From assembly GCF_036321535.1 (NCBI RefSeq), contig NC_087439.1:92690001-92754000 (forward strand): a stretch of 64,000 nucleotides of DNA, given 5' to 3'. A program made the position numbers and the translations under genes. Source of the stretch: Camelus dromedarius. Taxonomy: Eukaryota. Of this stretch, positions 2,514 through 51,851 are shown one piece after another; within the stretch, counting starts at the first letter, position 1, and every line of letters begins with the position of its first letter. The notes beneath the pieces were generated by a model. The model had not been told where the DNA came from. It was given only the letters and a program-made list of their open reading frames with translations, and did no database searches.

Positions 2514-4439
2514 TTTTTAAAATTATTTTAACTTTTTAAAATTGAGTTATAGTCATTTTACAATGTTGTGTCAATTTCCAGTGTAGAGCACAATTTTTCA
2601 GTTATACATGAACATACATATACTCATTGTCACATTTTTTTTCTCTGTGAACTACCACACGGTCTTGTATATATTTCCCTGTGCTATACAGTATAATCTT
2701 GTTTATCTGTTCTGCATATGCCTGTCGGTATCTACAAATCTTGAAATCCCAATCTGTCCCTTCCCATCCCATGCCCCCTTAGCAACCACAAGTTTGTATT
2801 CTATGTCTATGAGCCTGCTTCTGTTTTGTATTTATGTTCTTTTTTTTTTTTTTTAGATTCTACATATGAGTGATCTCATATGGTATTTTTCTTTCTCTTT
2901 CTGGCTTACTTCACTTAGAATGACATTCTCCAGGAGCTTGCATGTTGCTGCAANNNNNNNNNNNNNNNNNNNNNNNNNNNNNNNNNNNNNNNNNNNNNNN
3001 NNNNNNNNNNNNNNNNNNNNNNNNNNNNNNNNNNNNNNNNNNNNNNNNNNNNNNNNNNNNNNNNNNNNNNNNNNNNNNNNNNNNNNNNNNNNNNNNNNNN
3101 NNNNNNNNNNTTTTGAAGTAGGCTTCCTTCTGGTTATATGCCCAGAAGCGGGATTACTGGTAAGTCTTTTCCTAGTCTTTTGAGGAATCTCCATACTGTT
3201 TTCCACAGTGGCTGCACCAACCTGCATTCCCACCAGCAGTGTAGGAGGGCTCCTTTTTCTCCACACCTTCTCCAGCATTTGTCATNNNNNNNNNNNNNNN
3301 NNNNNNNNNNNNNNNNNNNNNNNNNNNNNNNNNNNNNNNNNNNNNNNNNNNNNNNNNNNNNNNNNNNNNNNNNNNNNNNNNNNNNNNNNNNNNNNNNNNN
3401 NNNNNNNNNNNNNNNTTGGAGAATTGCTTGTTTAGGTCTTCTGCCCATTTTCGGATTGGGTTGTTTGTTTTTTTTCTTATTATGTCGTATGAGCTGCTTA
3501 TGTATTCTAGAGATCAAGCCTTTGTTGGTTTCATCGTTTGCAAAAATTTTCTCCCATTCCTTAGGTTGTTGTTTTGTTTTACTTATGGTTTCCTTTGCTG
3601 TACAGAAGCTTGTAAGTTTAATTAGGTCCCATTTGTTTATTCTTGCTTTTATTTCTATTGTTTGGGTAGATTGCCTAGGCGAACATTTTTGAGATGTATG
3701 TGAGATAATGTTTTGCCTATATTTTCTTCTAGGAGGTTTATTGTATCTTGTCTCATGTGTCTTTGACCCATTTTGAGTTTATTTTTGTGTATGGTGTAAG
3801 GGAGTGTTCCAGCTTCACTGATTTACATGCTGCTGTCCAGTTTTCCCAACACCATTTGCTGAACAGACTTTCTTTATTCCATTGTATATTCTTGCCTTTG
3901 TCGAAGATTAGCTGACCAGAAGTTTGTGGGTTCATTTCTGGGCTCTCTATTCTGTTACATTGGTCCATATGTCTGTTTTTGATTTCTTTACACTAATGAT
4001 GAATCAACAGAAAAAGAAGGTAAAAAAAAATTCCCTTTAAAATAGCACCCAAAGTAATAAAATACCTAGGAATAAATCTAACCAAGGAGGTGAAAGACTT
4101 ATACATGGAAAACTATAAACCATTGATGAAGGAAATTAAAGAAGACTTAAAAACATGGAAACATATCCCATGCTCCTGGATTGGAAGAATCAATATTGTT
4201 AAAATGGTCACACTGCCCAAGGCAATCTACAGATTTAATGCAATCCCTATCAAATTACCCAGGACATAGTTCACAGAACTAGAACAAATCATAATAAAAT
4301 TTATATGGAACCACAAAAGACCTAGAATTGCCAAAGCATTACTGAAGAAAAAGAAAGAGGCAGGAGGAATAACTCTCTCAGACTTCAGACAATACTATAG
4401 AGATACAGTTATCAAGACAGCATGGTATTGGTACAAAAT
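2514..4439 (-). mobile_element. Younger 5'-truncated L1 with 5' inversion (twin-priming structure)
   Basis: Antisense 3'UTR/ORF2 end at 2514-~3982 joined to a sense ORF2 segment at ~3985-4438; exact 12-bp TSD tttatcatttta at 2502-2513 and 4440-4451. Confidence 0.85.
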
Positions 4440-8165: not shown

Positions 8166-11042
8166 TCTCTGGACATATGGGTCTTGTACATTTTAAATGC
8201 CAATAATATTAAGACTTCTTCTCCCTTCAGCAATGTATAAGTGTACTTTTTCTTCAAATTCTTGTCTACACTTACCTTCAGATTGAAAGTTTTTGCCAAC
8301 TCAATAGGTGAAAAAAATCTCAAGGTATTTTAATTTACATTTCCCTCATTAATTATTTATTTAAACATCTTTTTTTTTTTTTTTAAATGAAGTTGTTTGA
8401 CCAGTGAAGAAGAGACCTGGACTTGACCCCCCTCACTTACTAGAACTGATGCAACTTCTGATCACATCAGCTCTTTGAGCAACCCCACCATATTCTTGAC
8501 TCAGTGAATTTGTTCTTGTTGCTTGCAGTATTATTGGCTCAAATACTGGGGAGATCTCAGGGTATACTGGTTAGATATGGCTTGTTCCAGGGCTCAAACC
8601 ATGACCCCAGGACCCATTTTTCATCTGTAATTCTTGTGTCTGCTTCCTTGGTGATTACAGCCTTCTCAGGGTCATGATACCCCAGCATTGGGGGCTGTGG
8701 CCTGAGTCCTTTCCTCAGGATTCCTAGTAAGGCGCCTCTGCTTCACTGGCTCTCATTAAGTCACGTGTCCATTTCTGCACTAATCCCTGTGGCCAAAGGG
8801 ATGAGATGTGCTGAGTAGTTGAAGCCTGGGTTGCACGTTCGATCCCACAGTGGCTAGTGGTCCCTCACCTGAACCATGTATGAGAGTCCAGGGGAGGTGG
8901 CCGAGATGAGCCTCTCTCCAGGGGCTCCAAGTCCAAGAAATGCCAGTAGAGATCAGATGACACCAACGTCTAAATAAAATGCCACTGCGTTAATTTAGAA
9001 TTAGAGAGAGCTCTTTAATGTGACAAGAACACTTTCACTCCTCTGCAGGAATGTTCCTGCCCTCACCCCTCACTCATGGGTGTTTTAACGGGTTTGTGGG
9101 AATAGTTCAGGGGCTGAAATGCCTCATTCATAGCTGAGAACCCCTTTCCAGGGCCCCGTCTACCCACAACCCCCAGATCCATACCACCTTCTCCTGGGCG
9201 GCGTGGGATACCCTCTGCAGACCTGCCCCGGGTGTCCTCTGGGCCCCTCCTTTGTGAGCTGCCTTCTTTCTGTGAGTGCCCCCTATTGGATACTTCAGTG
9301 ACTGCCTGTCAGTCTGTTTCCAGCACTACTGCAACCTTTATTCTGGCCCTCACCTCCCACAAACCACAACCGTCACCCTTACTAAACCCCTAAGCACGCT
9401 GTGTATCCTCACTTGGCGTGATGTCTTTTTCAGTGGTTGTAAACAAAGGGCCAATGACCACAGTGAGGAAAGCCATAAAGTTCACCAGGAGAGTCTACCC
9501 CAGGGTCCACTGCAGTCAGAGCTGGACACGTCCCGGGACTGCTGAGTCCTCAGCAGGTCCAAGGGGATCCAGCTTGGTTAACTAGCAGCTCTGCCACCAG
9601 ACACGGTGCCACTAGAGGCGGGGGTGGCTGGGGACCCGAACAGCAGCTCCTGTTACTGAGGACAGTCACGCAGCTGCAGCGGCAACAGCACACTTGGAGT
9701 TCTGCCTTCCCCACGCCCTGCTCTGCTCACTCTCATGCCTTTGCACACGGAACGTGGGACACGAGCAGCCTCGATCCCACATGCACACGGGATTCTGCGT
9801 GGCTGTCAGTAGCAGTGAACGGGGAACAGAAATGACAGCTGTAAGCGGGGAGCAGAGGTCAGAAAATGACCTTGGGGCAAACGTGCGGCTGTGAGGCTGG
9901 GATGGAAATAAGATTCCGAAAAAGAGAGCACAGATGTGGCTGTTGGAGGGGAAGTAGGAGGACCAGGACTTTGGAGACGTTCACGACTTCCTGAGCAGAC
10001 TGGCGTCACTCCCCAGAGCAGGACCCAAGAAGTTGCACAATGGCCCCCACATTATGTACCCCCTACTCCGTTCTGGAGGAATCTGTCCTTATCAGGACTT
10101 AGGTCTGTAAGTGGCCTTGGAGAAAACGCTGCACATAAACTACGAGATGAAATAAAGGTCCAGATTAGTGGACACCTCAGGCCCCAAACAAACCAGCAGA
10201 AGACTTGAGCATCCAACAGACAGGAGAAGAATTCAGAGAGCCTGATCCGAGGCCAGGGGACGGCTCCCTCCTGTCCCATGATGAGCAGGCCCTGGGGGTT
10301 GGTGCTTTCAGACACCGCCTTGTCACTGCTAAGGGTGGTCTTGCCCAGGGACGCTTGAGATAACGGTAGCTCTTATTCCACAAGGCAGATATAGAACCTC
10401 CACCAACCCTTCGGTTGTCTTCATCAAGGATCGCTGCAGCTGCTTCAAGCAGTATCTCCTTGAAGAGTCATGAGAGGTGTCCTGGGGTGGAACAAGAATG
10501 AGACGGACAGCCAGCGTTGTCCCCGTTGAGGGAAAGCAGCTTTTGCAATGTTGTCTGTTTTCCTGGATGTGTTCCGTGTTCCCCATGATGGGGAAAAGAG
10601 TTTTAAGAGCTTTCAAATAGGGTCACCTACAGCAAAGAGGTTCTGTCTGGGGACGAGGTCATCAGTGACTCCTCAGAGCTGGGTGTCAGTCTCACAGAGA
10701 ACGGTTCACAGAGAAATAGGTGATCCAAGGAAATGGGAGGCCATGGCTTCACTAGGGAACTGGATGAAAAGCAAGAGAGTAAACTGGAAAGCCCGCAGAG
10801 GGAGCACTAGAGTCAGATGAGTTTTCCCAAGATAAGAAGGGTTAGTTTTTATCTGGAGAAAGTTGAAGTGGTAAAAGACACAGAGATTTATTCTGTAACG
10901 ATTAATGTAAGGAGGGGACAGTGCCTCCAATTACAAGCCATTTTGTTGAAATGGCTGAGAGATAAGATAAGGATGGCGGAACAAATGTAGGAGGCACAGC
11001 CTGCCCCGCAGTCAGTTGCTTCTGGCTCGGGCCACCGCGGCC

Positions 11043-11888
11043 ATGGGACCCCAGGTGCTGGCTGGACTGCTGCTGTGCCTGTGCGCCGGGCCCTGGGCCG
11101 AGGGCGGGAAGGTGCTGGTGGTCCCCATGGAGGGCAGCCACTGGCTCAGCATGCGGGAGGCCGTGCGGGAGCTCCACGCCAGGGGCCACCATACAGTCGT
11201 CCTTTCTCCAGAGGTGAACATGCACGTCAAGCCAGAGGACTTTTTCACCACGGAAACCTACGCTACTCCGAACACGCAGGACGAATTTGATTATGTCATG
11301 ATGGGCCAGGTGCATGTGCTATTTGAAAGAGTAAATTTTCTAAAGATGTTTTGGAATGCGATGGTAGGCTTGAAAAATGCGTCTTTAATCTTTCAAAGGT
11401 CTTGCGAGGCGCTGCTGTCTCACAAGGATCTGATCAGGCGCCTGAATGCCAGTTCCTTTGATGTGGTGTTAACTGACCCTGTTTACCCCTGCGGGGCAGT
11501 GCTGGCCAAGTACCTGACCCTTCCTGCGGTGTTTTTTTTGCGTGGCATTCCGTGTGACTTCGATGTTGAGGGCACAGCGTGCCCAAACCCTTTCTCGTAC
11601 GTTCCTAGGCTGTTAACAAGGAATTCAGACCACATGACATTCCTTCAAAGGGTCAAGAACATGCTGTACCCTCTGGCCCTGAAGTACATTTGCCACGCAT
11701 CTTACACTCCTTACGAACGGATGGCGTCCGAGCTTCTTCAGAGAGAGGTGTCGCTGGTGGAAGTTTTTAGCTCTGCGTCCGTGTGGCTGTTCAGAGGAGA
11801 CTTTGTGATGGATTACCCCCGGCCAGTCATGCCCAACATGGTCTTCATTGGGGGTATAAACTGTGCCAACAGGAAACCACTATCTCAG
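11043..11888 (+). CDS. UGT1A3/4/5-like variable exon 1, cassette 1, coding type A (282 codons)
   Basis: Signal peptide, [13 protein letters not shown] (catalytic His33), LTDP (Asp145), ends [13 protein letters not shown] followed by phase-0 donor cag|gtctgt. Confidence 0.93.
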
Positions 11889-13049
11889 GTCTGTATTGGT
11901 GCTTTTATTCCGTCCATGTTCCAAGTGCAACCCATTTAAAAAAGAACTTATATTCAGGTACTTATTTATCTACTGATCTTTCTAAATATTTCCACCTCTC
12001 AGTCTCTTGCTAACAGTCCTGGGTGAGCTAAATCGTTAAAGAGTCTCCAGTAGTGTGGTGAAGGCTTGTGATGGTCTTTGAGAGGAGTGACAGGAAGGGG
12101 TGAGGGTCTGTAATAGGTTTGGGAAGCAATGGTGTGATTCAACCCAGACTGCCCTTTGGTAAAGGCACCACGTCGTGGTTGTGCAGTTTTCTCCAGCTGA
12201 GCAGGAGCGGAGAACTTGAGCCGTGAACTCATCCACCGGGGTTTTTGCTTCATGGTGTTCAGTAGCAGGATTTAAGAACTAGCAAATTGCATTTGTTGAC
12301 ACGATAGTTCTTAGTGGTGTAGTGTTGGAAGGGACTGAGGTGTGGTCACAGGAGACCTAAACACCCAAAGGAGGCAGAGGTTTCAGAGAGGTCGAATAAA
12401 CTAAATGGGAGTGACACAATGGTGGAGAGAGAAGACGGGGTTCCTGTGATCGGAGCAAGAGATCACCGAGTCCAACTTTTGAGAGATGGAACCGTGCTGA
12501 CGAGGTGTCTTCTTCCCGAGAGTTGGTGTCTGGTGTGTGATGTGGGGATGTACCAGCGTTGGACTGCATGTCTTCTGCTTGGGACACTGAAGTCATTAAG
12601 GATGGTGGGCAGGGCTAGGGAGGAGATAAAACTGAGGCTATAAATGTAATGAAGGTGGGGGTAGGGATGCTGAGAAAGGAGTCTCAAAGGGAAGGGTTTG
12701 TTAGGAAGGGTCGACCGCATCACCAGACCTATCCCGCCACACCCCACCCCAGGTTTCCGTGGCGGTAACAGGGCTTTCCTGATCATTCCAGAGGCATCTT
12801 ACAAAACCCCGGATGTTTGGGTTCAATTGAAATAGGACTCTAGGGGGCTGGATTTGCTTCTTAATCTACCGAGTTAGCCATGTATTTTGCCCGTTTATGC
12901 CATAGTCATTGAATTGATCTTAACTGCTATGGCTTTAAATGTCTTCTAGGTTTTGTATTTTTACTGTCGTAGCTCTGTTTATTAATGTATATATTATTTT
13001 CAAGAACACCGACTTCATTTTCCTTTTTTGCTCACAACACAGATAATCA

Positions 13050-13215
13050 ATTTTTTTGTGTGTTTATTTTTTGGTCTGTGTTTCTGTTTAGTTTGTGTTG
13101 GTGGGGGGAGGTAATTAGGTTTATTCATTTAATTTTTTAATATCGAGGCACTGAGGACTGTACCCAGCCCCTTGCGCACGCTAAGCGTACGATCTACCGC
13201 TTGAGCGCTGCCCTC
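13050..13215 (-). mobile_element. Camelid-type tRNA SINE present in every array unit (others end at 18732, 24249, 29766, 35288, 40809)
   Basis: Reverse complement gagggcagcgctcaagcggtag...gctgggtacagtcctcagtgcc...aaacctaattacctcccccc aligns with the SINE at 6814. Confidence 0.8.
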
Positions 13216-16200
13216 TTCCTGCAAAGGATCTGACCTACTTGGTTTTCTTCTTCCTTGAAGTGGTGCATTTGTCCCGTTACACAATCTGTATGTATCCGTT
13301 AGATTTGTAAAAAGTGAAAAGTCGGAAGGCATTTAAAAATTATTGCCGCTGTTTTCCTTCTAGTTTTCCAATGGGAATATATTGTATGGAGTTTGACTGC
13401 ATTGGTTCAAGTCTTCACTCCCATTTTTCTAGCTGCATGACCTTGGGTGGGTGACCTAAGCATTCTGGCCTTAGTATTGCCACACTGAGCACACAATAAA
13501 TATGATCCATTTTCGTGATTTAGAAGATGCCGAGCAGGACAAGGTATGTCATCTGGAGGCATTTAGATAGGTTTGTGCCAATTATTTGTTACACGACAGA
13601 TCATTTACATTGAAATCCTCAAGTATCATAACAGGGTATGCACACCGTTGTCATGTTTGTTCCACTAAATGGTCTTTTACTTTGAGATTTTATCACTTTT
13701 ATTTATTTGGCTTGGTTTACCCGTAGATATCACTCCTTTAAATGTTTATGGAAATTGATCTCAAACTATGAAAGATTGAAGTCTAAATCTTTTATATGTG
13801 TGTTCCTTTTCCTTCTTAAGATTTAGGATGGGTTGCATTATCTTATTGGTGTTCTCAAAAAAAAAAAAACTCTAGGATTTGTTTATTCTGTTTACTATTG
13901 CTGTTTTCTCTTCCACTGATTGCAGCTTATTTTTAAATGAATGATATCATCCTTGTTGCCTTTGGTTCATTTTATAGTTGCTTTTCTCATTTCCTTAGGT
14001 AAACCTTAATTCCTTATAAAAATAATGAAGAACTGAAAGTCATAAATAAAACATGTTCTAGATCTCTAGGTTTTGGTACAAATTGCTATCATTTTCTCTT
14101 TGTTCACATTAATTTCTGTTTTTGATTTCTTCTTTGAATCAATGGCTATTGATTTTTTTTAAAAAAACAAGTCTGTTTTATAATTCCTATCTAGTTAAGA
14201 TATACTGTGGCTATGTTCTTTTTCTTCTAATTATTTTGGACTATAATTAGGGAATGGTTTCTTGTGAAGTCACCGATTAAAAAAATTTCTTACTAGATTT
14301 TATTCTGGTCTAGCATAGAATCATCCAATAGAATTATAGTGCAAGCCATGTATGTAACTGAGAGCTTTTTTAAGGCATGTTGAAAAAAAAAACCCAAGGT
14401 AGTAAATTATTTTTTAATCTATATTTTATTCAATCAAATACATCAAAAACATTATTCTTTAAACATACACGGAATACAAAATTTTTTTCAGGAGCTTGTT
14501 GCCATCCCCCCCTCGATTTCTTGAGATACAGTTGACATGCAGCACTGTCCAAGTTCAAGGTGCACAGCAGAAGGACATGACTTCCCTATCCCGTGATGCG
14601 ATTACCGCGGTAAACTGAGTGAACATCCATCAGCTCGTACACTTACAAAGTTAACGTGAAATGTCGCCCCAGAGAGTCTCCCCCAGGGTCCACTGCAGTC
14701 AGAGCAGGACACGTCCCGGGACTGCTGAGTCCTCAGCAGGTGCAAGGGGATCCAGCTTGGTTAACTAGCAGCTCTGCCACCAGACACGGTGCCACTAGAG
14801 GCGGGGGTGGCTGGGGACCCGAACAGCAGCTCCTGTTACTGAGGACAGTCATGCAGCTGCAGCGGCAACAGCACACTTGGAGTTCCGCCTTCCCCGCGCC
14901 CTGCTCTGCTCACTCTCATGCCTTTGCACACGGAACGTGGGACACGAGCAGCCTCGATCCCACATGCACACGGGATTCTGCGTGGCTGTCAGTAGCAGTG
15001 AACGGGGAGCAGAAATGACAGCTGTAAGCGGGGAGCAGAGGTCAGAAAATGACCTTGGGGCAAAGGTGCAGTTGTGAGGCTGGGACGGAAATAAGATTCC
15101 GTAAAAGAGAGCACAGATGTGGCTGTTGGAGGGGAAGTAAGAACACTGGGACCCTGGACTCACAGCCTACAAGGATGGATAAGCCAGGTGCTCCCTGCCC
15201 AGTGGCAGCTCATGTGACCCAGGAAGCATCGTGTTGGGCACGTGTTTGCTCGGTGCTGGATTCCGTTATCAGTGAAGTTCCCTAGTGGGGGTCACTTACT
15301 CCCAAAGGGAACCCTCAGCCTCTCCAGCACGTGGCCTGGTACTTGTTGTGGCTATGGGGAGCGCCAGGATGCAGAAGAGCTTGCTCAGGGCGAGGGAAGC
15401 CTGGGCAGCCCAAGGAGCCCTCTGGCCGCATCCCCAGGGCAGAAAGGACAAGGAGATGTCCAGATGTACTGAGCACGCGTGGCGTCACTCCCTGGGGCGG
15501 GGCTGGACTCGTGGGCATGTGAATCAAGAGTTGCGCAGGGGACCCCACATTATGTACGCCTCCTGTGCTGGAGGAATCTGTCCTCACCAGGACTTAGGGC
15601 TGCAAGTGACCTTGGAGAAAAATTTGCACATAAACTATGAGATGCAATAAAGGTCCAGATTAATGGACACCCCAGGCCCTAAACAGAGTAGCAGAAGACT
15701 TGAGCCTCCAACAGTCAGGAGAAGAATTCAGGGAGCCTGATCTGAGACCAGGGAACGGCTCCCTTCGGTCCCATGGCGAGCAGCCCTGGGGGACAGTGAT
15801 CTGACCTCCCATGTCATTGCTAAGGGGGGTCTTACCCATTGATGCTTGAGATGATGGCAACTCTTATTCCATGAGGCAGATATAGAATGTCAACCAACAC
15901 TTCTGTTGTCTTCATCAAGGATCCCTAAAGATAGTTCCTTATCTGACAGCAGCTTCAAGTAGACTCCTCTGTGCACGCTAGGAAAGGCGTCCTGGGGTGG
16001 GACAGGAATGAGACAGACAGCCAGTGTTGTCTCCATTGAGAGAAAGCTGTCTTAGTAATACTATCTGATTTCCTGGATGTGCTCCATGTTCCCCATGATG
16101 GCGGGAAAGAGTTTTAAGAGCTTCCAGTAGGGTCACCTGCAGCAGAGAGGTTCTGGATGGGGACGAAGGCTGAGGTGTCTCCTCATACCTCAGTGTCACC

Positions 16201-16419
16201 TTCACAGAGCATGGTTCACAGAGAAACAGGAGAGGATCCAAGGAAACGGGCGTCCACAGCCTCGCTTTGGAACTGGATGAAAAATAAGAGAGTGAACTGG
16301 AATGGCCCCAGAGGGAGCAGCAGAGTCAGATGAGTTGTTTTGGAGATAAGAGAGATTGGTCTTTAGCTGGGAGAAGGTAGAAATGTTGAAAGACAGGGAT
16401 AGATTTATTCTGTAATGAT

Positions 16420-16559
16420 TAATGTAAGGAGGGGACTTGCCTCCAATTACATGCCATTTTGCTTGCGTGGCTGGGAGATAAGATAAAGACAGTGGAAACC
16501 ACTGTAGGAGGCACAGCCTGCCCCGCAGTCAGTTGCTTCTGGCTCGGGCCACCGCGGCC
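16420..16559 (+). promoter_or_regulatory. Proximal promoter of type-B cassettes (same at +5517 and +11034): HNF1-like site, XRE, tandem GATA motifs
   Basis: tgtaatgattaat (HNF1-like), TTGCGTG at 16463-16469 (AhR XRE consensus TNGCGTG), agataagataa; function inferred from motif match only. Confidence 0.55.
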
Positions 16560-17405
16560 ATGGGACCCCAGGTGCTGGCTGGACTGCTGCTGTGCCTGTG
16601 CGCCGGGCCCTGGGCCGAGGGCGGGAAGGTGCTGGTGGTCCCCATGGAGGGCAGCCACTGGCTCAGCATGCGGGAGGCCGTGCGGGAGCTCCACGCCAGG
16701 GGCCACCACGCAGTCGTCCTTTCTCCAGAGGTGAACATGCACATCAAGCCAGAGGACTTTTTCACCACGGAAACCTATGCTACTACGTACACGCAGGACA
16801 CACTTGATTACCTCATGATAGCCCATATTCATTTGGTTTTTGAGAGAGTAAATTTTCTAAAGACGTTTTGGAATACAATGCTAGTTTTCAAAAATGTGTC
16901 TGTGATCTTTCAAAGGTCTTGCGAGGCGCTGCTGTCTCACAAGGATCTGATCAGGCGCCTGAATGCCAGTTCCTTTGATGTGGTGTTAACTGACCCTGTT
17001 TACCCCTGCGGGGCAGTGCTGGCCAAGTACCTGTCCCTTCCTGTGGTGTTCTTTCTGCGTTTCATTCCATGTGACTTCGATGTTGAGGGCACAGCGTGCC
17101 CAAACCCTTTCTCGTACGTTCCTAGGCTGTTAACAAGGAATTCAGACCACATGACATTCCTTCAAAGGGTCAAGAACATGCTGTACCCTCTGGCCCTGAA
17201 GTACATTTGCCACGCATCTTACACTCCTTACGAACGGATGGCGTCCGAGCTTCTTCAGAGAGAGGTGTCGCTGGTGGAAGTTTTTAGCTCTGCGTCCGTG
17301 TGGCTGTTCAGAGGAGACTTTGTGATGGATTACCCCCGGCCAGTCATGCCCAACATGGTCTTCATTGGGGGTATAAACTGTGCCAACAGGAAACCACTAT
17401 CTCAG
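16560..17405 (+). CDS. UGT1A3/4/5-like variable exon 1, cassette 2, coding type B
   Basis: Intact 846-bp ORF ending KPLSQ with donor cag|gtctgt; 23 aa differences from type A. Confidence 0.93.
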
Positions 17406-20400: not shown

Positions 20401-22076
20401 TCCGCCTTCCCCGCGCCCTGCTCTGCTCACTCTCATGCCTTTGCACACGGAACGTGGGACACGAGCAGCCTCGATCCCACATGCACACGGGATTCTGCGT
20501 GGCTGTCAGTAGCAGTGAACGGGGAGCAGAAATGACAGCTGTAAGCGGGGAGCAGAGGTCAGAAAATGACCTTGGGGCAAAGGTGCAGTTGTGAGGCTGG
20601 GACGGAAATAAGATTCCGTAAAAGAGAGCACAGATGTGGCTGTTGGAGGGGAAGTAAGAACACTGGGACCCTGGACTCACAGCCTACAAGGATGGATAAG
20701 CCAGGTGCTCCCTGCCCAGTGGCAGCTCATGTGACCCAGGAAGCATCGTGTTGGGCACGTGTTTGCTCGGTGCTGGATTCCGTTATCAGTGAAGTTCCCT
20801 AGTGGGGGTCACTTACTCCCAAAGGGAACCCTCAGCCTCTCCAGCACGTGGCCTGGTACTTGTTGTGGCTATGGGGAGCGCCAGGATGCAGAAGAGCTTG
20901 CTCAGGGCGAGGGAAGCCTGGGCAGCCCAAGGAGCCCTCTGGCCGCATCCCCAGGGCAGAAAGGACAAGGAGATGTCCAGATGTACTGAGCACGCGTGGC
21001 GTCACTCCCTGGGGCGGGGCTGGACTCGTGGGCATGTGAATCAAGAGTTGCGCAGGGGACCCCACATTATGTACGCCTCCTGTGCTGGAGGAATCTGTCC
21101 TCACCAGGACTTAGGGCTGCAAGTGACCTTGGAGAAAAATTTGCACATAAACTATGAGATGCAATAAAGGTCCAGATTAATGGACACCCCAGGCCCTAAA
21201 CAGAGTAGCAGAAGACTTGAGCCTCCAACAGTCAGGAGAAGAATTCAGGGAGCCTGATCTGAGACCAGGGAACGGCTCCCTTCGGTCCCATGGCGAGCAG
21301 CCCTGGGGGACAGTGATCTGACCTCCCATGTCATTGCTAAGGGGGGTCTTACCCATTGATGCTTGAGATGATGGCAACTCTTATTCCATGAGGCAGATAT
21401 AGAATGTCAACCAACACTTCTGTTGTCTTCATCAAGGATCCCTAAAGATAGTTCCTTATCTGACAGCAGCTTCAAGTAGACTCCTCTGTGCACGCTAGGA
21501 AAGGCGTCCTGGGGTGGGACAGGAATGAGACAGACAGCCAGTGTTGTCTCCATTGAGAGAAAGCTGTCTTAGTAATACTATCTGATTTCCTGGATGTGCT
21601 CCATGTTCCCCATGATGGCGGGAAAGAGTTTTAAGAGCTTCCAGTAGGGTCACCTGCAGCAGAGAGGTTCTGGATGGGGACGAAGGCTGAGGTGTCTCCT
21701 CATACCTCAGTGTCACCTTCACAGAGCATGGTTCACAGAGAAACAGGAGAGGATCCAAGGAAACGGGCGTCCACAGCCTCGCTTTGGAACTGGATGAAAA
21801 ATAAGAGAGTGAACTGGAATGGCCCCAGAGGGAGCAGCAGAGTCAGATGAGTTGTTTTGGAGATAAGAGAGATTGGTCTTTAGCTGGGAGAAGGTAGAAA
21901 TGTTGAAAGACAGGGATAGATTTATTCTGTAATGATTAATGTAAGGAGGGGACTTGCCTCCAATTACATGCCATTTTGCTTGCGTGGCTGGGAGATAAGA
22001 TAAAGACAGTGGAAACCACTGTAGGAGGCACAGCCTGCCCCGCAGTCAGTTGCTTCTGGCTCGGGCCACCGCGGCC

Positions 22077-22922
22077 ATGGGACCCCAGGTGCTGGCTGGA
22101 CTGCTGCTGTGCCTGTGCGCCGGGCCCTGGGCCGAGGGCGGGAAGGTGCTGGTGGTCCCCATGGAGGGCAGCCACTGGCTCAGCATGCGGGAGGCCGTGC
22201 GGGAGCTCCACGCCAGGGGCCACCACGCAGTCGTCCTTTCTCCAGAGGTGAACATGCACATCAAGCCAGAGGACTTTTTCACCACGGAAACCTATGCTAC
22301 TACGTACACGCAGGACACACTTGATTACCTCATGATAGCCCATATTCATTTGGTTTTTGAGAGAGTAAATTTTCTAAAGACGTTTTGGAATACAATGCTA
22401 GTTTTCAAAAATGTGTCTGTGATCTTTCAAAGGTCTTGCGAGGCGCTGCTGTCTCACAAGGATCTGATCAGGCGCCTGAATGCCAGTTCCTTTGATGTGG
22501 TGTTAACTGACCCTGTTTACCCCTGCGGGGCAGTGCTGGCCAAGTACCTGTCCCTTCCTGTGGTGTTCTTTCTGCGTTTCATTCCATGTGACTTCGATGT
22601 TGAGGGCACAGCGTGCCCAAACCCTTTCTCGTACGTTCCTAGGCTGTTAACAAGGAATTCAGACCACATGACATTCCTTCAAAGGGTCAAGAACATGCTG
22701 TACCCTCTGGCCCTGAAGTACATTTGCCACGCATCTTACACTCCTTACGAACGGATGGCGTCCGAGCTTCTTCAGAGAGAGGTGTCGCTGGTGGAAGTTT
22801 TTAGCTCTGCGTCCGTGTGGCTGTTCAGAGGAGACTTTGTGATGGATTACCCCCGGCCAGTCATGCCCAACATGGTCTTCATTGGGGGTATAAACTGTGC
22901 CAACAGGAAACCACTATCTCAG
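22077..22922 (+). CDS. UGT1A3/4/5-like variable exon 1, cassette 3, coding type B
   Basis: Same translation as cassette 2; intact donor. Confidence 0.9.
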
Positions 22923-25900: not shown

Positions 25901-27593
25901 AACAGCACACTTGGAGTTCCGCCTTCCCCGCGCCCTGCTCTGCTCACTCTCATGCCTTTGCACACGGAACGTGGGACACGAGCAGCCTCGATCCCACATG
26001 CACACGGGATTCTGCGTGGCTGTCAGTAGCAGTGAACGGGGAGCAGAAATGACAGCTGTAAGCGGGGAGCAGAGGTCAGAAAATGACCTTGGGGCAAAGG
26101 TGCAGTTGTGAGGCTGGGACGGAAATAAGATTCCGTAAAAGAGAGCACAGATGTGGCTGTTGGAGGGGAAGTAAGAACACTGGGACCCTGGACTCACAGC
26201 CTACAAGGATGGATAAGCCAGGTGCTCCCTGCCCAGTGGCAGCTCATGTGACCCAGGAAGCATCGTGTTGGGCACGTGTTTGCTCGGTGCTGGATTCCGT
26301 TATCAGTGAAGTTCCCTAGTGGGGGTCACTTACTCCCAAAGGGAACCCTCAGCCTCTCCAGCACGTGGCCTGGTACTTGTTGTGGCTATGGGGAGCGCCA
26401 GGATGCAGAAGAGCTTGCTCAGGGCGAGGGAAGCCTGGGCAGCCCAAGGAGCCCTCTGGCCGCATCCCCAGGGCAGAAAGGACAAGGAGATGTCCAGATG
26501 TACTGAGCACGCGTGGCGTCACTCCCTGGGGCGGGGCTGGACTCGTGGGCATGTGAATCAAGAGTTGCGCAGGGGACCCCACATTATGTACGCCTCCTGT
26601 GCTGGAGGAATCTGTCCTCACCAGGACTTAGGGCTGCAAGTGACCTTGGAGAAAAATTTGCACATAAACTATGAGATGCAATAAAGGTCCAGATTAATGG
26701 ACACCCCAGGCCCTAAACAGAGTAGCAGAAGACTTGAGCCTCCAACAGTCAGGAGAAGAATTCAGGGAGCCTGATCTGAGACCAGGGAACGGCTCCCTTC
26801 GGTCCCATGGCGAGCAGCCCTGGGGGACAGTGATCTGACCTCCCATGTCATTGCTAAGGGGGGTCTTACCCATTGATGCTTGAGATGATGGCAACTCTTA
26901 TTCCATGAGGCAGATATAGAATGTCAACCAACACTTCTGTTGTCTTCATCAAGGATCCCTAAAGATAGTTCCTTATCTGACAGCAGCTTCAAGTAGACTC
27001 CTCTGTGCACGCTAGGAAAGGCGTCCTGGGGTGGGACAGGAATGAGACAGACAGCCAGTGTTGTCTCCATTGAGAGAAAGCTGTCTTAGTAATACTATCT
27101 GATTTCCTGGATGTGCTCCATGTTCCCCATGATGGCGGGAAAGAGTTTTAAGAGCTTCCAGTAGGGTCACCTGCAGCAGAGAGGTTCTGGATGGGGACGA
27201 AGGCTGAGGTGTCTCCTCATACCTCAGTGTCACCTTCACAGAGCATGGTTCACAGAGAAACAGGAGAGGATCCAAGGAAACGGGCGTCCACAGCCTCGCT
27301 TTGGAACTGGATGAAAAATAAGAGAGTGAACTGGAATGGCCCCAGAGGGAGCAGCAGAGTCAGATGAGTTGTTTTGGAGATAAGAGAGATTGGTCTTTAG
27401 CTGGGAGAAGGTAGAAATGTTGAAAGACAGGGATAGATTTATTCTGTAATGATTAATGTAAGGAGGGGACTTGCCTCCAATTACATGCCATTTTGCTTGC
27501 GTGGCTGGGAGATAAGATAAAGACAGTGGAAACCACTGTAGGAGGCACAGCCTGCCCCGCAGTCAGTTGCTTCTGGCTCGGGCCACCGCGGCC

Positions 27594-28439
27594 ATGGGAC
27601 CCCAGGTGCTGGCTGGACTGCTGCTGTGCCTGTGCGCCGGGCCCTGGGCCGAGGGCGGGAAGGTGCTGGTGGTCCCCATGGAGGGCAGCCACTGGCTCAG
27701 CATGCGGGAGGCCGTGCGGGAGCTCCACGCCAGGGGCCACCACGCAGTCGTCCTTTCTCCAGAGGTGAACATGCACATCAAGCCAGAGGACTTTTTCACC
27801 ACGGAAACCTATGCTACTACGTACACGCAGGACACACTTGATTACCTCATGATAGCCCATATTCATTTGGTTTTTGAGAGAGTAAATTTTCTAAAGACGT
27901 TTTGGAATACAATGCTAGTTTTCAAAAATGTGTCTGTGATCTTTCAAAGGTCTTGCGAGGCGCTGCTGTCTCACAAGGATCTGATCAGGCGCCTGAATGC
28001 CAGTTCCTTTGATGTGGTGTTAACTGACCCTGTTTACCCCTGCGGGGCAGTGCTGGCCAAGTACCTGTCCCTTCCTGTGGTGTTCTTTCTGCGTTTCATT
28101 CCATGTGACTTCGATGTTGAGGGCACAGCGTGCCCAAACCCTTTCTCGTACGTTCCTAGGCTGTTAACAAGGAATTCAGACCACATGACATTCCTTCAAA
28201 GGGTCAAGAACATGCTGTACCCTCTGGCCCTGAAGTACATTTGCCACGCATCTTACACTCCTTACGAACGGATGGCGTCCGAGCTTCTTCAGAGAGAGGT
28301 GTCGCTGGTGGAAGTTTTTAGCTCTGCGTCCGTGTGGCTGTTCAGAGGAGACTTTGTGATGGATTACCCCCGGCCAGTCATGCCCAACATGGTCTTCATT
28401 GGGGGTATAAACTGTGCCAACAGGAAACCACTATCTCAG
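27594..28439 (+). CDS. UGT1A3/4/5-like variable exon 1, cassette 4, coding type B
   Basis: Same translation as cassette 2; intact donor. Confidence 0.9.
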
Positions 28440-31400: not shown

Positions 31401-33115
31401 CATGCAGCTGCAGCGGCAACAGCACACTTGGAGTTCCGCCTTCCCCGCGCCCTGCTCTGCTCACTCTCATGCCTTTGCACACGGAACGTGGGACACGAGC
31501 AGCCTCGATCCCACATGCACACGGGATTCTGCGTGGCTGTCAGTAGCAGTGAACGGGGAGCAGAAATGACAGCTGTAAGCGGGGAGCAGAGGTCAGAAAA
31601 TGACCTTGGGGCAAAGGTGCAGTTGTGAGGCTGGGACGGAAATAAGATTCCGTAAAAGAGAGCACAGATGTGGCTGTTGGAGGGGAAGTAAGAACACTGG
31701 GACCCTGGACTCACAGCCTACAAGGATGGATAAGCCAGGTGCTCCCTGCCCAGTGGCAGCTCATGTGACCCAGGAAGCATCGTGTTGGGCACGTGTTTGC
31801 TCGGTGCTGGATTCCGTTATCAGTGAAGTTCCCTAGTGGGGGTCACTTACTCCCAAAGGGAACCCTCAGCCTCTCCAGCACGTAGCCTGGCACTTGTTGT
31901 GGCTATGGGGAGCGCCAGGATGCAGAAGAGCTTGCTCAGGGCGAGGGAAGCCTGGGCAGCCCAAGGAGCCCTCTGGCCGCATCCCCAGGGCAGAAAGGAC
32001 AAGGAGATGTCCAGGTGTACTGAGCACGCGTGGCGTCACTCCACGGGGCAGGGCCAGGCTCGTGGGCTTGCAATCCAAGCAGCTGCACAGGGGACCCCAC
32101 GTTATGTACGCCTCCTGTTCTGGAGGAATGTGTCCTCACCTGGACTTAGGGCTGCAAGTGACCTTGGAGAAAAATTTGCACATAAACTACGAGATGCAAA
32201 AAGGTCCGAATTAATGCACACCCCAGGGCCCAAACAGAGTAGCGGAAGAATTGTACCTCCAACAATCAGGAGAAGAATTCAGACAGCCTGATCCGAGGCC
32301 AGGGGACGGCTCCCTCCTGTCCCGTGGTGAGCAGCCCCTGGAGGATGGCGTTCTCTGACCCCCCGTGTCACTGCTAAGGGTGGTCTTGCTCGTGGATGCT
32401 TGAGATAACGGTAACTCTTATTCCACGAGGCAGATACAGAATCTCAACCAACCCTTCTGTTGTCTTCGTCAAGGATCGCTGCAGATACTTCCATGTCTGA
32501 GAGCTGCTTCAAGTAGTCTCTCCTTGAAGAGTCACGAGAGGCGTCCTGGGGTGGAACAGGAATGAGATGGGCAGCCAGCGTCCGGTCCCCATGGACAGAA
32601 AGCTGTCTTAGAAATGCCTGTTTTCCTGGATGTGCTCTGTGTTCCCCATGACGGTGGGAAAGAGATTTAAGGGCTCCAGATAGCGTCACCTGCAGCAGAG
32701 AGGTTGTGTTTCGAGATGAGGCCTTAGGTGACTCCTCAAATCTCAGAGTCGACTTCACAGAATACGGTTCACAGAGAAATAGGAGAGGATCCAAGGAAAC
32801 GGGCGTCCACAGCCTCACTTTGGGAACTGGATGAAAAACAGGAGAGTGAACTGGAATGCACCCCCCCAGAGGGAGCAGCAGAGTCAGATGAGTTTTCCCA
32901 AGGTAAGAGGGGTTGGTCTTTATCTGGGAGAAAGTAAAATGGTGAAAGACAGGGAGAGATTTATTCTCTAATGATTAACGTAAGGGGGGGACTTGCCTCC
33001 AATTACATGCCATTTTGTTGAAATGGCTGGGATATAAGATAAAGACAGTGGAAACCACTGTAGGAGGCACAGCCTGCCCCGCAGTCAGTTGCTTCTGGCT
33101 CGGGCCACCGCGGCC

Positions 33116-33961
33116 ATGGGACCCCAGGTGCTGGCTGGACTGCTGCTGTGCCTGTGCGCCGGGCCCTGGGCCGAGGGCGGGAAGGTGCTGGTGGTCCCCA
33201 TGGAGGGCAGCCACTGGCTCAGCATGCGGGAGGCCGTGCGGGAGCTCCACGCCAGGGGCCACCATACAGTCGTCCTTTCTCCAGAGGTGAACATGCACGT
33301 CAAGCCAGAGGACTTTTTCACCACGGAAACCTACGCTACTCCGAACACGCAGGACGAATTTGATTATGTCATGATGGGCCAGGTGCATGTGCTATTTGAA
33401 AGAGTAAATTTTCTAAAGATGTTTTGGAATGCGATGGTAGGCTTGAAAAATGCGTCTTTAATCTTTCAAAGGTCTTGCGAGGCGCTGCTGTCTCACAAGG
33501 ATCTGATCAGGCGCCTGAATGCCAGTTCCTTTGATGTGGTGTTAACTGACCCTGTTTACCCCTGCGGGGCAGTGCTGGCCAAGTACCTGACCCTTCCTGC
33601 GGTGTTTTTTTTGCGTGGCATTCCGTGTGACTTCGATGTTGAGGGCACAGCGTGCCCAAACCCTTTCTCGTACGTTCCTAGGCTGTTAACAAGGAATTCA
33701 GACCACATGACATTCCTTCAAAGGGTCAAGAACATGCTGTACCCTCTGGCCCTGAAGTACATTTGCCACGCATCTTACACTCCTTACGAACGGATGGCGT
33801 CCGAGCTTCTTCAGAGAGAGGTGTCGCTGGTGGAAGTTTTTAGCTCTGCGTCCGTGTGGCTGTTCAGAGGAGACTTTGTGATGGATTACCCCCGGCCAGT
33901 CATGCCCAACATGGTCTTCATTGGGGGTATAAACTGTGCCAACAGGAAACCACTATCTCAG
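33116..33961 (+). CDS. UGT1A3/4/5-like variable exon 1, cassette 5, coding type A
   Basis: Same translation as cassette 1; intact donor; different upstream promoter from cassette 1. Confidence 0.92.
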
Positions 33962-36900: not shown

Positions 36901-38637
36901 AGCTCCTGTTACTGAGGACAGTCATGCAGCTGCAGCGGCAACAGCACACTTGGAGTTCCGCCTTCCCCGCGCCCTGCTCTGCTCACTCTCATGCCTTTGC
37001 ACACGGAACGTGGGACACGAGCAGCCTCGATCCCACATGCACACGGGATTCTGCGTGGCTGTCAGTAGCAGTGAACGGGGAGCAGAAATGACAGCTGTAA
37101 GCGGGGAGCAGAGGTCAGAAAATGACCTTGGGGCAAAGGTGCAGTTGTGAGGCTGGGACGGAAATAAGATTCCGTAAAAGAGAGCACAGATGTGGCTGTT
37201 GGAGGGGAAGTAAGAACACTGGGACCCTGGACTCACAGCCTACAAGGATGGATAAGCCAGGTGCTCCCTGCCCAGTGGCAGCTCATGTGACCCAGGAAGC
37301 ATCGTGTTGGGCACGTGTTTGCTCGGTGCTGGATTCCGTTATCAGTGAAGTTCCCTAGTGGGGGTCACTTACTCCCAAAGGGAACCCTCAGCCTCTCCAG
37401 CACGTAGCCTGGCACTTGTTGTGGCTATGGGGAGCGCCAGGATGCAGAAGAGCTTGCTCAGGGCGAGGGAAGCCTGGGCAGCCCAAGGAGCCCTCTGGCC
37501 GCATCCCCAGGGCAGAAAGGACAAGGAGATGTCCAGGTGTACTGAGCACGCGTGGCGTCACTCCACGGGGCAGGGCCAGGCTCGTGGGCTTGCAATCCAA
37601 GCAGCTGCACAGGGGACCCCACGTTATGTACGCCTCCTGTTCTGGAGGAATGTGTCCTCACCTGGACTTAGGGCTGCAAGTGACCTTGGAGAAAAATTTG
37701 CACATAAACTACGAGATGCAAAAAGGTCCGAATTAATGCACACCCCAGGGCCCAAACAGAGTAGCGGAAGAATTGTACCTCCAACAATCAGGAGAAGAAT
37801 TCAGACAGCCTGATCCGAGGCCAGGGGACGGCTCCCTCCTGTCCCGTGGTGAGCAGCCCCTGGAGGATGGCGTTCTCTGACCCCCCGTGTCACTGCTAAG
37901 GGTGGTCTTGCTCGTGGATGCTTGAGATAACGGTAACTCTTATTCCACGAGGCAGATACAGAATCTCAACCAACCCTTCTGTTGTCTTCGTCAAGGATCG
38001 CTGCAGATACTTCCATGTCTGAGAGCTGCTTCAAGTAGTCTCTCCTTGAAGAGTCACGAGAGGCGTCCTGGGGTGGAACAGGAATGAGATGGGCAGCCAG
38101 CGTCCGGTCCCCATGGACAGAAAGCTGTCTTAGAAATGCCTGTTTTCCTGGATGTGCTCTGTGTTCCCCATGACGGTGGGAAAGAGATTTAAGGGCTCCA
38201 GATAGCGTCACCTGCAGCAGAGAGGTTGTGTTTCGAGATGAGGCCTTAGGTGACTCCTCAAATCTCAGAGTCGACTTCACAGAATACGGTTCACAGAGAA
38301 ATAGGAGAGGATCCAAGGAAACGGGCGTCCACAGCCTCACTTTGGGAACTGGATGAAAAACAAGAGAGTGAACTGGAATGCACCCCCCCAGAGGGAGCAG
38401 CAGAGTCAGATGAGTTTTCCCAAGGTAAGAGGGGTTGGTCTTTATCTGGGAGAAAGTAAAATGGTGAAAGACAGGGAGAGATTTATTCTCTAATGATTAA
38501 CGTAAGGAGGGGACTTGCCTCCAATTACATGCCATTTTGTTGAAATGGCTGGGATATAAGATAAAGACAGTGGAAACCACTGTAGGAGGCACAGCCTGCC
38601 CCGCAGTCAGTTGCTTCTGGCTCGGGCCACCGCGGCC

Positions 38638-39482
38638 ATGGGACCCCAGGTGCTGGCTGGACTGCTGCTGTGCCTGTGCGCCGGGCCCTGGGCCGAGGGC
38701 GGGAAGGTGCTGGTGGTCCCCCATGGAGGGCAGCCACTGGCTCAGCATGCGGGAGGCCGTGCGGGAGCTCCACGCCAGGGGCCACCATACAGTCGTCCTT
38801 TCTCCAGAGGTGAACATGCACGTCAAGCCAGAGGACTTTTTCACCACGGAAACCTACGCTACTCCGAACACGCAGGACGAATTTGATTATGTCATGATGG
38901 GCCAGGTGCATGTGCTATTTGAAAGAGTAAATTTTCTAAAGATGTTTTGGAATGCGATGGTAGGCTTGAAAAATGCGTCTTTAATCTTTCAAAGGTCTTG
39001 CGAGGCGCTGCTGTCTCACAAGGATCTGATCAGGCGCCTGAATGCCAGTTCCTTTGATGTGGTGTTAACTGACCCTGTTTACCCCTGCGGGGCAGTGCTG
39101 GCCAAGTACCTGACCCTTCTGCGGTGTTTTTTTTGCGTGGCATTCCGTGTGACTTCGATGTTGAGGGCACAGCGTGCCCAAACCCTTTCTCGTACGTTCC
39201 TAGGCTGTTAACAAGGATTCAGACCACATGACATTCCTTCAAAGGGTCAAGAACATGCTGTACCCTCTGGCCCTGAAGTACATTTGCCACGCATCTTACA
39301 CTCCTTACGAACGGATGGCGTCCGAGCTTCTTCAGAGAGAGGTGTCGCTGGTGGAAGTTTTTAGCTCTGCGTCCGTGTGGCTGTTCAGAGGAGACTTTGT
39401 GATGGATTACCCCCGGCCAGTCATGCCCAACATGGTCTTCATTGGGGGTATAAACTGTGCCAACAGGAAACCACTATCTCAG
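38638..39482 (+). CDS. UGT1A3/4/5-like variable exon 1, cassette 6, type A, with three 1-bp homopolymer indels (probably read errors)
   Basis: 845 bp; +C near 38720, -C near 39119, -A near 39216; otherwise matches cassette 5; donor intact; lies close to a contig end. Confidence 0.7.
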
Positions 39483-41463
39483 GTCTGTATTGGTGCTTTT
39501 ATTCCGTCCATGTTCCAAGTGCAACCCATTTAAAAAAGAACTTATATTCAGGTACTTATTTATCTACTGATCTTTCTAAATATTTCCACCTCTCAGTCTC
39601 TTGCTAACAGTCCTGGGTGAGCTAAATCGTTAAAGAGTCTCCAGTAGTGTGGTGAAGGCTTGTGATGGTCTTTGAGAGGAGTGACAGGAAGGGGTGAGGG
39701 TCTGTAATAGGTTTGGGAAGCAATGGTGTGATTCAACCCAGACTGCCCTTTGGTAAAGGCACCACGTCGTGGTTGTGCAGTTTTCTCCAGCTGAGCAGGA
39801 GCGGAGAACTTGAGCCGTGAACTCATCCACCGGGGTTTTTGCTTCATGGTGTTCAGTAGCAGGATTTAAGAACTAGCAAATTGCATTTGTTGACACGATA
39901 GTTCTTAGTGGTGTAGTGTTGGAAGGGACTGAGGTGTGGTCACAGGAGACCTAAACACCCAAAGGAGGCAGAGGTTTCAGAGAGGTCGAATAAACTAAAT
40001 GGGAGTGACACAATGGTGGAGAGAGAAGACGGGGTTCCTGTGATCGGGAGCAAGAGATCACCGAGTCCAACTTTTGAGAGATGGAACCGTGCTGACGAGG
40101 TGTCTTCTTCCCGAGAGTTGGTGTCTGGTGTGTGATGTGGGGATGTACCAGCGTTGGACTGCATGTCTTCTGCTTGGGACACTGAAGTCATTAAGGATGG
40201 TGGGCAGGGCTAGGGAGGAGATAAAACTGAGGCTATAAATGTAATGAAGGTGGGGGTAGGGATGCTGAGAAAGGAGTCTCAAAGGGAAGGGTTTGTTAGG
40301 AAGGGTCGACCGCATCACCAGACCTATCCCGCCACACCCCACCCCAGGTTTCCGTGGCGGTAACAGGGCTTTCCTGATCATTCCAGAGGCATCTTACAAA
40401 ACCCCGGATGTTTGGGTTCAATTGAAATAGGACTCTAGGGGGCTGGATTTGCTTCTTAATCTACCGAGTTAGCCATGTATTTTGCCCGTTTATGCCATAG
40501 TCATTGAATTGATCTTAACTGCTATGGCTTTAAATGTCTTCTAGGTTTTGTATTTTTACTGTCGTAGCTCTGTTTATTAATGTATATATTATTTTCAAGA
40601 ACACCGACTTCATTTTCCTTTTTTGCTCACAACACAGATAATCATTTTTTTGTGTGTTTATTTTTTGGTCTGTGTTTCTGTTTAGTTTGTGTTGGTGGGG
40701 GGAGGTAATTAGGTTTATTCATTTAATTTTTTAATATCGAGGCACTGAGGACTGTACCCAGCCCCTTGCGCACGCTAAGCGTACGATCTACCGCTTGAGC
40801 GCTGCCCTCTTCCTGCAAAGGATCTGACCTACTTGGTTTTCTTCTTCCTTGAAGTGGTGCATTTGTCCCGTTACACAATCTGTATGTATCCGTTAGATTT
40901 GTAAAAGTGAAAAGTCGGAAGGCATTTAAAAATTATTGCCGCTGTTTTCCTTCTAGTTTTCCAATGGGAATATATTGTATGGAGTTTGACTGCATTGGTT
41001 CAAGTCTTCACTCCCATTTTTCTAGCTGCATGACCTTGGGTGGGTGACCTAAGCATTCTGGCCTTAGTATTGCCACACTGAGCACACAATAAATATGATC
41101 CATTTTCGTGATTTAGAAGATGCCGAGCAGGACAAGGTATGTCATCTGGAGGCATTTAGATAGGTTTGTGCCAATTATTTGTTACACGACAGATCATTTA
41201 CATTGAAATCCTCAAGTATCATAACAGGGTATGCACACCGTTGTCATGTTTGTTCCACTAAATAGTCTTTTACTTTGAGATTTTATCACTTTTATTTATT
41301 TGGCTTGGTTTACCCGTAGATATCACTCCTTTAAATGTTTATGGAAATTGATCTCAAACTATGAAAGATTGAAGTCTAAATCTTTTATATGTGTGTTCCT
41401 TTTCCTTCTTAAGATTTAGGATGGGTTGCATTATCTTATTGGTGTTCTCAAAAAAAAAAAAAC

Positions 41464-41480
41464 ACGCAGCGCTCGACTGT
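41464..41480 (-). other. Probable untrimmed PacBio barcode (bc1008) at contig end
   Basis: acgcagcgctcgactgt is not part of the repeat unit (which continues ctctaggattt) and is the reverse complement of ACAGTCGAGCGCTGCGT, the bc1008 barcode as I recall it. Confidence 0.8.
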
Positions 41481-41680
41481 NNNNNNNNNNNNNNNNNNNN
41501 NNNNNNNNNNNNNNNNNNNNNNNNNNNNNNNNNNNNNNNNNNNNNNNNNNNNNNNNNNNNNNNNNNNNNNNNNNNNNNNNNNNNNNNNNNNNNNNNNNNN
41601 NNNNNNNNNNNNNNNNNNNNNNNNNNNNNNNNNNNNNNNNNNNNNNNNNNNNNNNNNNNNNNNNNNNNNNNNNNNNNNNN
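41481..41680. other. Scaffolding gap (exactly 200 N)
   Basis: Round length; the two flanks are not colinear with a repeat unit. Confidence 0.9.
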
Positions 41681-51134: not shown

Positions 51135-51851
51135 TCACTTGATGTCAATGTGCAGCAACTGCTCTTTGCCATTTATTATCAGGGACTTTAGCTCTCCGTC
51201 TTCTTCCACTTCTACCCTTTCTTGGCCATTCTCAACGACTCTCTTGGTGGTGATTTTTTTGCCATTAATGATTTCGGTGGAAGTCGACACGGATTTGAAG
51301 TTGCCCGTCCCACCACTACCGCAAGACATGGAGAAGGAAGAAACGCCCCCGTTCCCCACGGAACCAAAGGAAGTAAATCCTGTATCAAAAGAAGAAAAAC
51401 TACCTCCAAATGCTGGAAATCCACTGAAGGTGGAGGAAAGGGGTGCGGATCCTCTGCATCTGCTTCCCCGGGAGCTCCTCCGACACCCTAAAATGTTCTC
51501 ACGCGAGTCTCCAAAGAAATCAAATGAAAATGGGTCCCGGCCGCCGAAGAACTCCCTGAAGACATCGGCTGGGTCGCGGAAGGTGAAGACGTCCTCGAAG
51601 GGGTCCTCGAAGGGTCTGCCGCCGCCGCCCTCCACCCCGGCCTCGCCGCATCGGTCGTAGACGTCCCTCTTCTTGGCGTCTGACAGCACCTCGTAAGCCT
51701 GGGCCACTTGCTTGAATCTCCTCTCCGCCTCCTCCTTGTTCTCGGGGTTTTTGTCCGGGTGCCACTTGAGCGCCAGCTTGCGGTAGGCCTTCCTAATGGC
51801 CTCGGACGAGGCCCGGCGGGGCACGCCCAGCACCTCGTAGTAGTCCACCAT
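51135..51851 (-). CDS. DNAJB3: DnaJ/Hsp40 subfamily B member 3 (intronless DNAJB6-like retrogene), 238 aa
   Basis: MVDYYEVL start, J domain with HPD (WHPDKN), G/F-rich linker, STST region, C-terminus [13 protein letters not shown]; no introns; antisense position upstream of UGT1A1 exon 1 matches the known locus. Confidence 0.92.

Follow-up and report, generated by a model that had tools for sequence, protein, structure and literature searches.

Differences between two types of UGT1A3/4/5-like first exon are confined to a 360-base segment within a homogenised tandem array of camels

The 64,000-nucleotide stretch of Camelus dromedarius DNA analysed here (the window) represents the dromedary UGT1A locus at its bilirubin-group end and harbours a tandem array of UGT1A3/4/5-like first exons with a period of 5517 bp, in which two exon types follow each other in the order A-B-B-B-A-A, as read by aligning the complete units. 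In total, 37 bases distinguish type A from type B, and every one of them lies within exon bases 150-510 (window 11192-11552). We hold it about 70% probable that A and B are old paralogous first exons in a reshuffled array, in which the exon flanks and most of the spacer have been homogenised and a 360-base segment has been left divergent.

The 5517-bp units were delimited by self-BLAST; Tandem Repeats Finder, for which the longest detectable period is 500 bases, reported no repeat in the window. Units U1 to U5 start at positions 11016, 16533, 22050, 27567 and 33089 and U6 at 38611, and every unit comprises one open exon of 282 codons terminating in CAG/GT (Table 1). Among U1, U2 and U3 only 37 positions differ (unit positions 177-537), the sequence being otherwise identical across 5517 bp. 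The perfect identity of the five dromedary units could in part be an assembly or polishing effect, and recent duplication of units or unequal crossing-over would explain it no less well than conversion. U6 is truncated by a gap of 200 N (41481-41680). Its remaining part (38611-41480) matches type A with six single-base indels, all in short one-base runs, and one substitution; the frameshifts may represent errors of the assembly consensus and not a true pseudogene.

Table 1. Positions of the array features within the window
Feature	Position	Strand	Remarks
Promoter P0	10026-11015	+	precedes U1; orthologue of the sequence in front of alpaca exon 1 (5% divergence)
First exon type A, unit U1	11043-11888	+	282 codons, ATG at 11043, GT donor at 11889; behind promoter P0
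Patch 1	11192-11387	+	codons 50-115 (exon bases 150-345); accounts for 30 of the 37 A/B differences
Inter-patch segment	11388-11516	+	codons 116-158; 129 bases identical in A and B, with catalytic Asp145 inside
Patch 2	11517-11552	+	codons 159-170 (exon bases 475-510); accounts for 7 of the 37 differences, G168F among them
Spacer D	11889-15332	+	downstream of the exon; identical in U1-U4, one difference in U5
Promoter X	15333-16477	+	upstream of a B exon; further copies at 20850-21994 and 26367-27511
First exon type B, unit U2	16560-17405	+	layout as type A of U1; behind promoter X
First exon type B, unit U3	22077-22922	+	unit U3 identical to U2 along its full length
First exon type B, unit U4	27594-28439	+	
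Promoter Y	31884-33033	+	upstream of the A exon of U5; second copy at ~37406-38555
First exon type A, unit U5	33116-33961	+	behind promoter Y
First exon type A, unit U6	38638-39482	+	three 1-base indels in short base runs of the exon

The translated A exon matches a protein of Camelus dromedarius that bears the name UGT 1-3 with 100% identity and shows 70-81% identity to UGT1A3-like proteins of other mammals, the matches carrying PF00201. A 527-residue RefSeq isoform opens with the A exon, with one residue different (M266K), and its C-terminal half matches solved UGT donor (C-terminal) domains; the common exons (2-5) lie outside the window. Types A and B both comprise 282 codons and end in the splice donor ...CAG/GTCTGT. 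The array is located upstream of a UGT1A1-like exon (57965-58828, plus strand), as expected for its position in a UGT1A cluster. Alignment with this exon, in which no internal indel is required, places His33 and Asp145 of the camel exons opposite His39 and Asp151, and the translations contain the sequons N112-x-S and N135-A-S; the preliminary description had noted that all four features are retained in both types, and the alignment and the translations confirm this. The human UGT1A3 hit was excluded from every alignment and tree, and a literature search on camel UGT1A returned nothing relevant.

The window contains further features downstream of the array. The UGT1A1-like first exon itself has 288 codons, a GT donor and the catalytic residues His39 and Asp151, and is 50% identical to the A exon. 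Between it and the array lies an intronless ORF of 263 residues with a DnaJ J-domain-like start (51135-51926, minus strand); a gene annotated as DnaJ occupies the corresponding location in the older dromedary assembly. A weak tblastn match to the 3' part of a UGT exon (49847-50068, plus strand; 33% over 98 residues) is probably the remnant of a decayed first exon.

Codon comparison of A and B reproduces every count that had been given for the two types, namely 23 differing residues, all of them between 51 and 168, with 18 in the stretch 76-115, and only seven codons that differ silently. The replacements affect residues 51, 62, 76, 77, 81, 82, 85, 87-90, 92, 93, 102, 106, 108-110, 113, 115, 159, 162 and 168, and the silent changes codons 50, 73, 84, 95, 164, 166 and 170. 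Codons 1-49, 116-158 and 171-282 are identical, as described before, and so is the downstream spacer for which identity over about 3 kb had been noted: across the 3780 bp that follow the patch, U1-U4 show no difference and U5 departs from them by one base. In the full alignment the differences are confined to 361 positions and are not spread along the exon, in line with the clustering originally proposed; the chance that all 37 would fall into 361 of the 846 exon positions is ~10^-14. The earlier statement that the differences are mostly non-synonymous is correct as a count, but neutral change predicts the same: with ~3.3 non-synonymous sites per synonymous site and an omega of 0.64-0.80, such a number of non-synonymous changes is expected under neutrality.

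Two histories adjoin within this exon. In the patch, dromedary and Bactrian copies differ by 6 bases for type A and by 5 bases for type B, as compared to 33-37 bases between A and B. The maximum likelihood (ML) tree of the patch groups the copies by type, with a support of 89 for dromedary A with Bactrian A and of 95 for dromedary B with Bactrian B, whereas the ML trees of the exon flanks and of a segment combining the exon's 3' part with 1.7 kb of spacer group them by species (support 94 and 99). The 3' part of the exon shows no differences within species and two fixed differences between them; all three Bactrian copies (fB, fA1 and fA2) carry the derived state at exon bases 606 and 673 (E225Q) irrespective of type, as does C. 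bactrianus. In the spacer part D1 the distance is 0.47% within the Bactrians versus 0.9-1.0% between species. Flank and spacer sequences of paralogues from one species are thus closer to each other than those of orthologues from different species, as in concerted evolution. The grouping of the patch by type and of the flanks by species directly shows that the flanks were homogenised after the dromedary/Bactrian split and that the patch was spared. The suggestion that conversion erased the rest of the divergence is borne out to this extent: the discordance of the trees and the derived bases 606 and 673 demonstrate that homogenisation is real and went on after the species had split. GC3 is 0.45-0.50 in codons 76-115 and 0.63-0.94 in the flanks, a contrast that is non-discriminating because hippo and sperm whale have the same profile.

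The last 1.1 kb of each unit constitutes the promoter of the next exon. Two promoter types occur in the unit tails and a third, P0, upstream of U1: X precedes all three B exons and Y the A exons of U5 and U6. X and Y diverge by 12.7-13.4%, and P0 is ~22% distant from X and ~20% from Y. Because the region upstream of alpaca exon 2 is only 6.8% apart from Y, it is identified as the orthologue of Y, as is its counterpart upstream of exon 1 for P0 at 5%. The divergence of the promoter types (13-22%) has escaped homogenisation in all camels, the P0-A unit itself being absent in the Bactrians. Both Y-type promoter copies contain an identical ORF of 151 residues with a GTG start (31836-32291 and 37358-37813, plus strand), probably a chance ORF in GC-rich DNA.

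Divergence in the units is not restricted to promoters and patch. The Bactrian B and A1 units are mosaics that are near-identical along most of their length and differ in a small diverged block at -300 to -250 and in a 900-bp non-coding block from +2600 to +3500, which is 7% diverged with 12 gap events. In the latter, the spacer of the Bactrian B unit is orthologous to the alpaca spacer (5.4% apart), and the A1 type together with the dromedary type forms a second, older lineage; in the dromedary the difference in this block has been lost. The survival of this non-coding block demonstrates that an old block can persist without a coding function. Among old blocks outside the promoters, the exon patch is the only one retained in all three camel species, its persistence being judged on two independent camel lineages only.

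To compare the locus in other camelids we used the assemblies of C. ferus, C. bactrianus and alpaca and the older dromedary assembly GCA_000803125.3. Both Bactrian camel assemblies (C. ferus and C. bactrianus) have the order B-A-A, arranged as X-B, X-A and Y-A, and in the absence of the P0-A unit their unique upstream sequence joins X directly. As copy number and order differ from the dromedary array and P0-A is missing, unequal crossing-over must have taken place. In the dromedary window, positions 9485-9956, in front of the first unit, repeat spacer positions 3654-4124 with 97% identity, and this copy is likely to represent the homology used in the unequal crossover that removed P0-A in the Bactrians. 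The A and B cassettes are found behind different promoters, as P0-A, Y-A, X-B and X-A. The alpaca has two units, a P0-exon and a Y-exon, and the examined alpaca sequence (24 kb) yielded no X-B unit. Its two exons are homogenised through patch 1 and still differ (G/F) at residue 168. An older C. bactrianus protein pairs a type B patch 1 with the residues of type A at 162 and 168, which together with the alpaca exons indicates that the borders of the spared region shift. The older dromedary assembly has one A exon, with M266K, in place of the six units of the newer one, which would reflect either a collapse of the array or else a true difference in copy number between animals.

The synonymous divergence of the patch, with a dS of ~0.15 over codons 50-171, higher values in the core and an overall range of 0.15-0.34, is comparable to the divergence of promoters X and Y and exceeds the camel-alpaca divergence of the coding flanks several times: the flanks have a dS of 0 when A is compared with B, and of ~0.04 for camel versus alpaca. 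This match with the X/Y divergence argues that B is an old paralogue and not a fast-evolving one. With hippo and sperm whale as outgroups, five sites show the ancestral state in B and a derived state in A and alpaca, as compared to one and two sites for the rival groupings. The patch tree joins alpaca and A against B only weakly, with a support of 46%, so that the age of B depends chiefly on its promoter. From these sequence comparisons we conclude with moderate confidence that B, together with X, would be an old paralogue predating the camel-alpaca split, lost or overwritten in alpaca; as no X-B unit is present in the examined alpaca sequence, a loss in that lineage has to be assumed.

We then consider selection on the patch. 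The Nei-Gojobori omega of A versus B is 0.64 over codons 50-171 and 0.70-0.74 in the core, and the pairwise ML codon model yields 0.80-0.97 with p = 0.56-0.95 against omega = 1. The elevated dN/dS that had been anticipated is therefore not observed, as none of the values between 0.64 and 0.97 differs from 1. In the flanks omega is ~0.2 for camel versus alpaca. For the patch segment it reaches 0.92 between hippo and sperm whale and ~1 between camel A and alpaca, and these equal values show that the ratio belongs to the region and not to the contrast of A and B. This is further supported by 30 other mammalian UGT1A3-like proteins, in which the 23 variable sites fall at the most variable positions (entropy 1.82 versus 0.65, p = 2e-9). 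Thus, the excess of replacements is a standing property of a weakly constrained hypervariable segment and not a signature of diversification between A and B.

Li and Wu listed 20 pocket residues of a modelled UGT1A1 (Li and Wu 2007, PMC1885805), from which the camel numbering is obtained by subtracting 6. Four of the 20 are variable between A and B (UGT1A1 residues 93, 96, 99 and 174, i.e. camel 87, 90, 93 and 168), and four more adjoin variable sites (camel 61, 86, 94 and 169). Seven A/B sites (102-115) are located on a long helix beyond the listed pocket residues. In UGT1A10, Phe90 and Phe93 have reportedly been mapped to the phenol-binding site. A structure search found no solved N-terminal domain of any mammalian UGT. 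An AlphaFold model built with an alignment of database proteins has a mean pLDDT of 53.6, with values of 65-88 in residues 21-165, and was used for secondary structure only. At this low confidence, the A/B sites are predicted to fall on three helices (79-87, 90-94 and 99-126), at the end of a fourth (150-158), in strand 162-166 and in the loop after this strand. The placement of the differences over the aglycone-binding region is thus a fair description at the level of secondary structure but no finer, given the weak model.

Taken together, we propose that unequal crossing-over and gene conversion would keep reshuffling the array. The lineage of type B would accompany promoter X and have about the age of the X/Y split, roughly twice the camel-alpaca divergence. 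Recombination has later homogenised the exon in its 5' part, its 3' part and the 129 bases that separate the patches, together with the greater part of the spacer, and in the dromedary very recent unit duplications would have rendered all units identical outside patch and promoters. The old coding divergence that remains would then be the 360-base segment for the hypervariable acceptor (aglycone) helices and loops, comprising residues 76-115, the beta-5 strand and the next loop. Of these points, the sequences themselves show the homogenisation, the retention of both types in several species, the age of the patch and a dN/dS close to neutrality. This segment may have persisted because conversion tracts are rejected at ~15% mismatch, or because they are purged by selection for two specificities, or both; sequence data would not separate mismatch rejection from selection.

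It is a serious but less than even prospect that the patch is a specificity cassette kept by selection, in which case conversions overwriting it would lose one of the two substrate profiles and be eliminated, and neutral homogenisation would trim the divergence down to the selected residues. All three camel species retain both types despite the homogenisation of the flanks that followed speciation, and the cassette occurs behind several promoters (P0-A, Y-A, X-B and X-A). The homogenised parts, including the identical bases between the patches, closely border the clusters of amino acid differences, and the sites coincide with the hypervariable acceptor region (PMC1885805). The selected specificity cassette of the preliminary description is nevertheless weakened by an omega that is not above 1 and equals that of other species pairs for the same segment, and by the non-coding blocks that likewise escaped homogenisation. 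Moreover, the older C. bactrianus protein, with patch 1 of B and the A state at 162/168, indicates that patch 2 can be lost, and the alpaca exons have been homogenised through patch 1. A recent A/B split followed by a burst of positive selection, in which the patch diverged fast by adaptive amino acid change, we regard as very unlikely. It might be read from 23 replacements in 118 codons and from an ML omega near 1 in codons 51-115, but omega is never significantly above 1, and the synonymous divergence of the patch is as high as the old non-coding divergence while dS in the flanks is 0 or ~0.04.

Two further readings were considered. The lack of any difference beyond a short tract, of a size typical for conversion, together with adjacent double changes at 241/242, 326/327 and 502/503, could suggest that the units are very young duplicates, one of which recently acquired its patch through ectopic conversion, the donor being a third UGT1A exon that had diverged. 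This appears very unlikely, as both patch types are already present in Bactrian camels, B retains ancestral states common to the outgroups, the window holds no donor, and two events would be needed for two patches separated by 129 identical bases. The UGT1A1-like exon was considered as a donor and rejected: in the patch it shows 52% identity, and at the 37 sites it agrees with A 12 times and with B 13 times. We give next to no credence to an assembly artefact, by which the array or the A/B dimorphism would stem from collapsed haplotypes or mis-polished repeats. Units of 100% identity, homopolymer indels in U6 beside the N gap and the single A exon at this position in the older dromedary assembly would be in keeping with such an artefact, but three assemblies of two other camel species contain both types, with species-specific differences. 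In addition, 14 DNA-like runs from at least nine studies each contain 0.94 of the words sampled from the A-spacer-B stretch, which is suggestive only, as one patch accounts for ~6% of the words and this share alone is no proof that words of the B patch are present.

The best named matches of the camel exons are UGT1A3-like, which relates them to human UGT1A3, UGT1A4 and UGT1A5. This human trio is ~93-94% identical and has distinct substrate preferences. The variation between camel A and B at four pocket residues, with four more adjacent, also resembles the hypervariable acceptor pocket of vertebrate UGTs (Li and Wu 2007). Regional gene conversion has been described for the variable exons of the clustered protocadherins in fugu, zebrafish and mammals, where paralogues are >99% identical over one part of the exon, including synonymous sites, and the part presumed to determine recognition specificity is divergent (PMC1852091). 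In contrast to the protocadherins, in which the whole 5' half is spared, the spared part in camels is an internal 360-base segment, split in two and homogenised on both sides, and the spacer or intron DNA is homogenised too. A contrast in GC3 is a mark of conversion in the fugu protocadherins; it is also present in the camel, but there it is shared by hippo and sperm whale. UGT1 clusters have been reported to evolve mainly by birth-and-death, with conversion detected in dog only (PMC1885805). The camel array shares cluster and type of event with the dog phenol-group genes Ugt1a7-a11 reported in that paper, but concerns the bilirubin-like UGT1A3/4/5 group and involves homogenisation after speciation, seen across species, and a change in copy number. 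The mechanism is thus already known from the protocadherins and dog Ugt1a7-a11, and the camel array is a clean new instance where conversion was held to be minor.

The camel array therefore provides a clear counter-example in UGT1 clusters, the textbook example of variable first exons that evolve by birth-and-death and convert little (Li and Wu 2007). Type-wise and species-wise histories adjoin within one exon, and the remaining coding divergence is confined to the hypervariable acceptor segment. It also calls for caution, as many replacement differences in such a patch are not evidence of positive selection. The two enzymes, which differ in 23 residues, represent a natural swap experiment. 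It is conceivable, though rather doubtful, that the 360-base segment acts as a portable specificity module, such that recombination in its flanks would shift the A or B pocket between promoters and alter copy number while selection keeps both. If so, camels could adjust the choice, the site and the level of the glucuronidation specificities that they express. For camel pharmacology, the sequences predict at least two UGT1A3-like isoforms, with a copy number that would vary between species and perhaps between individuals.
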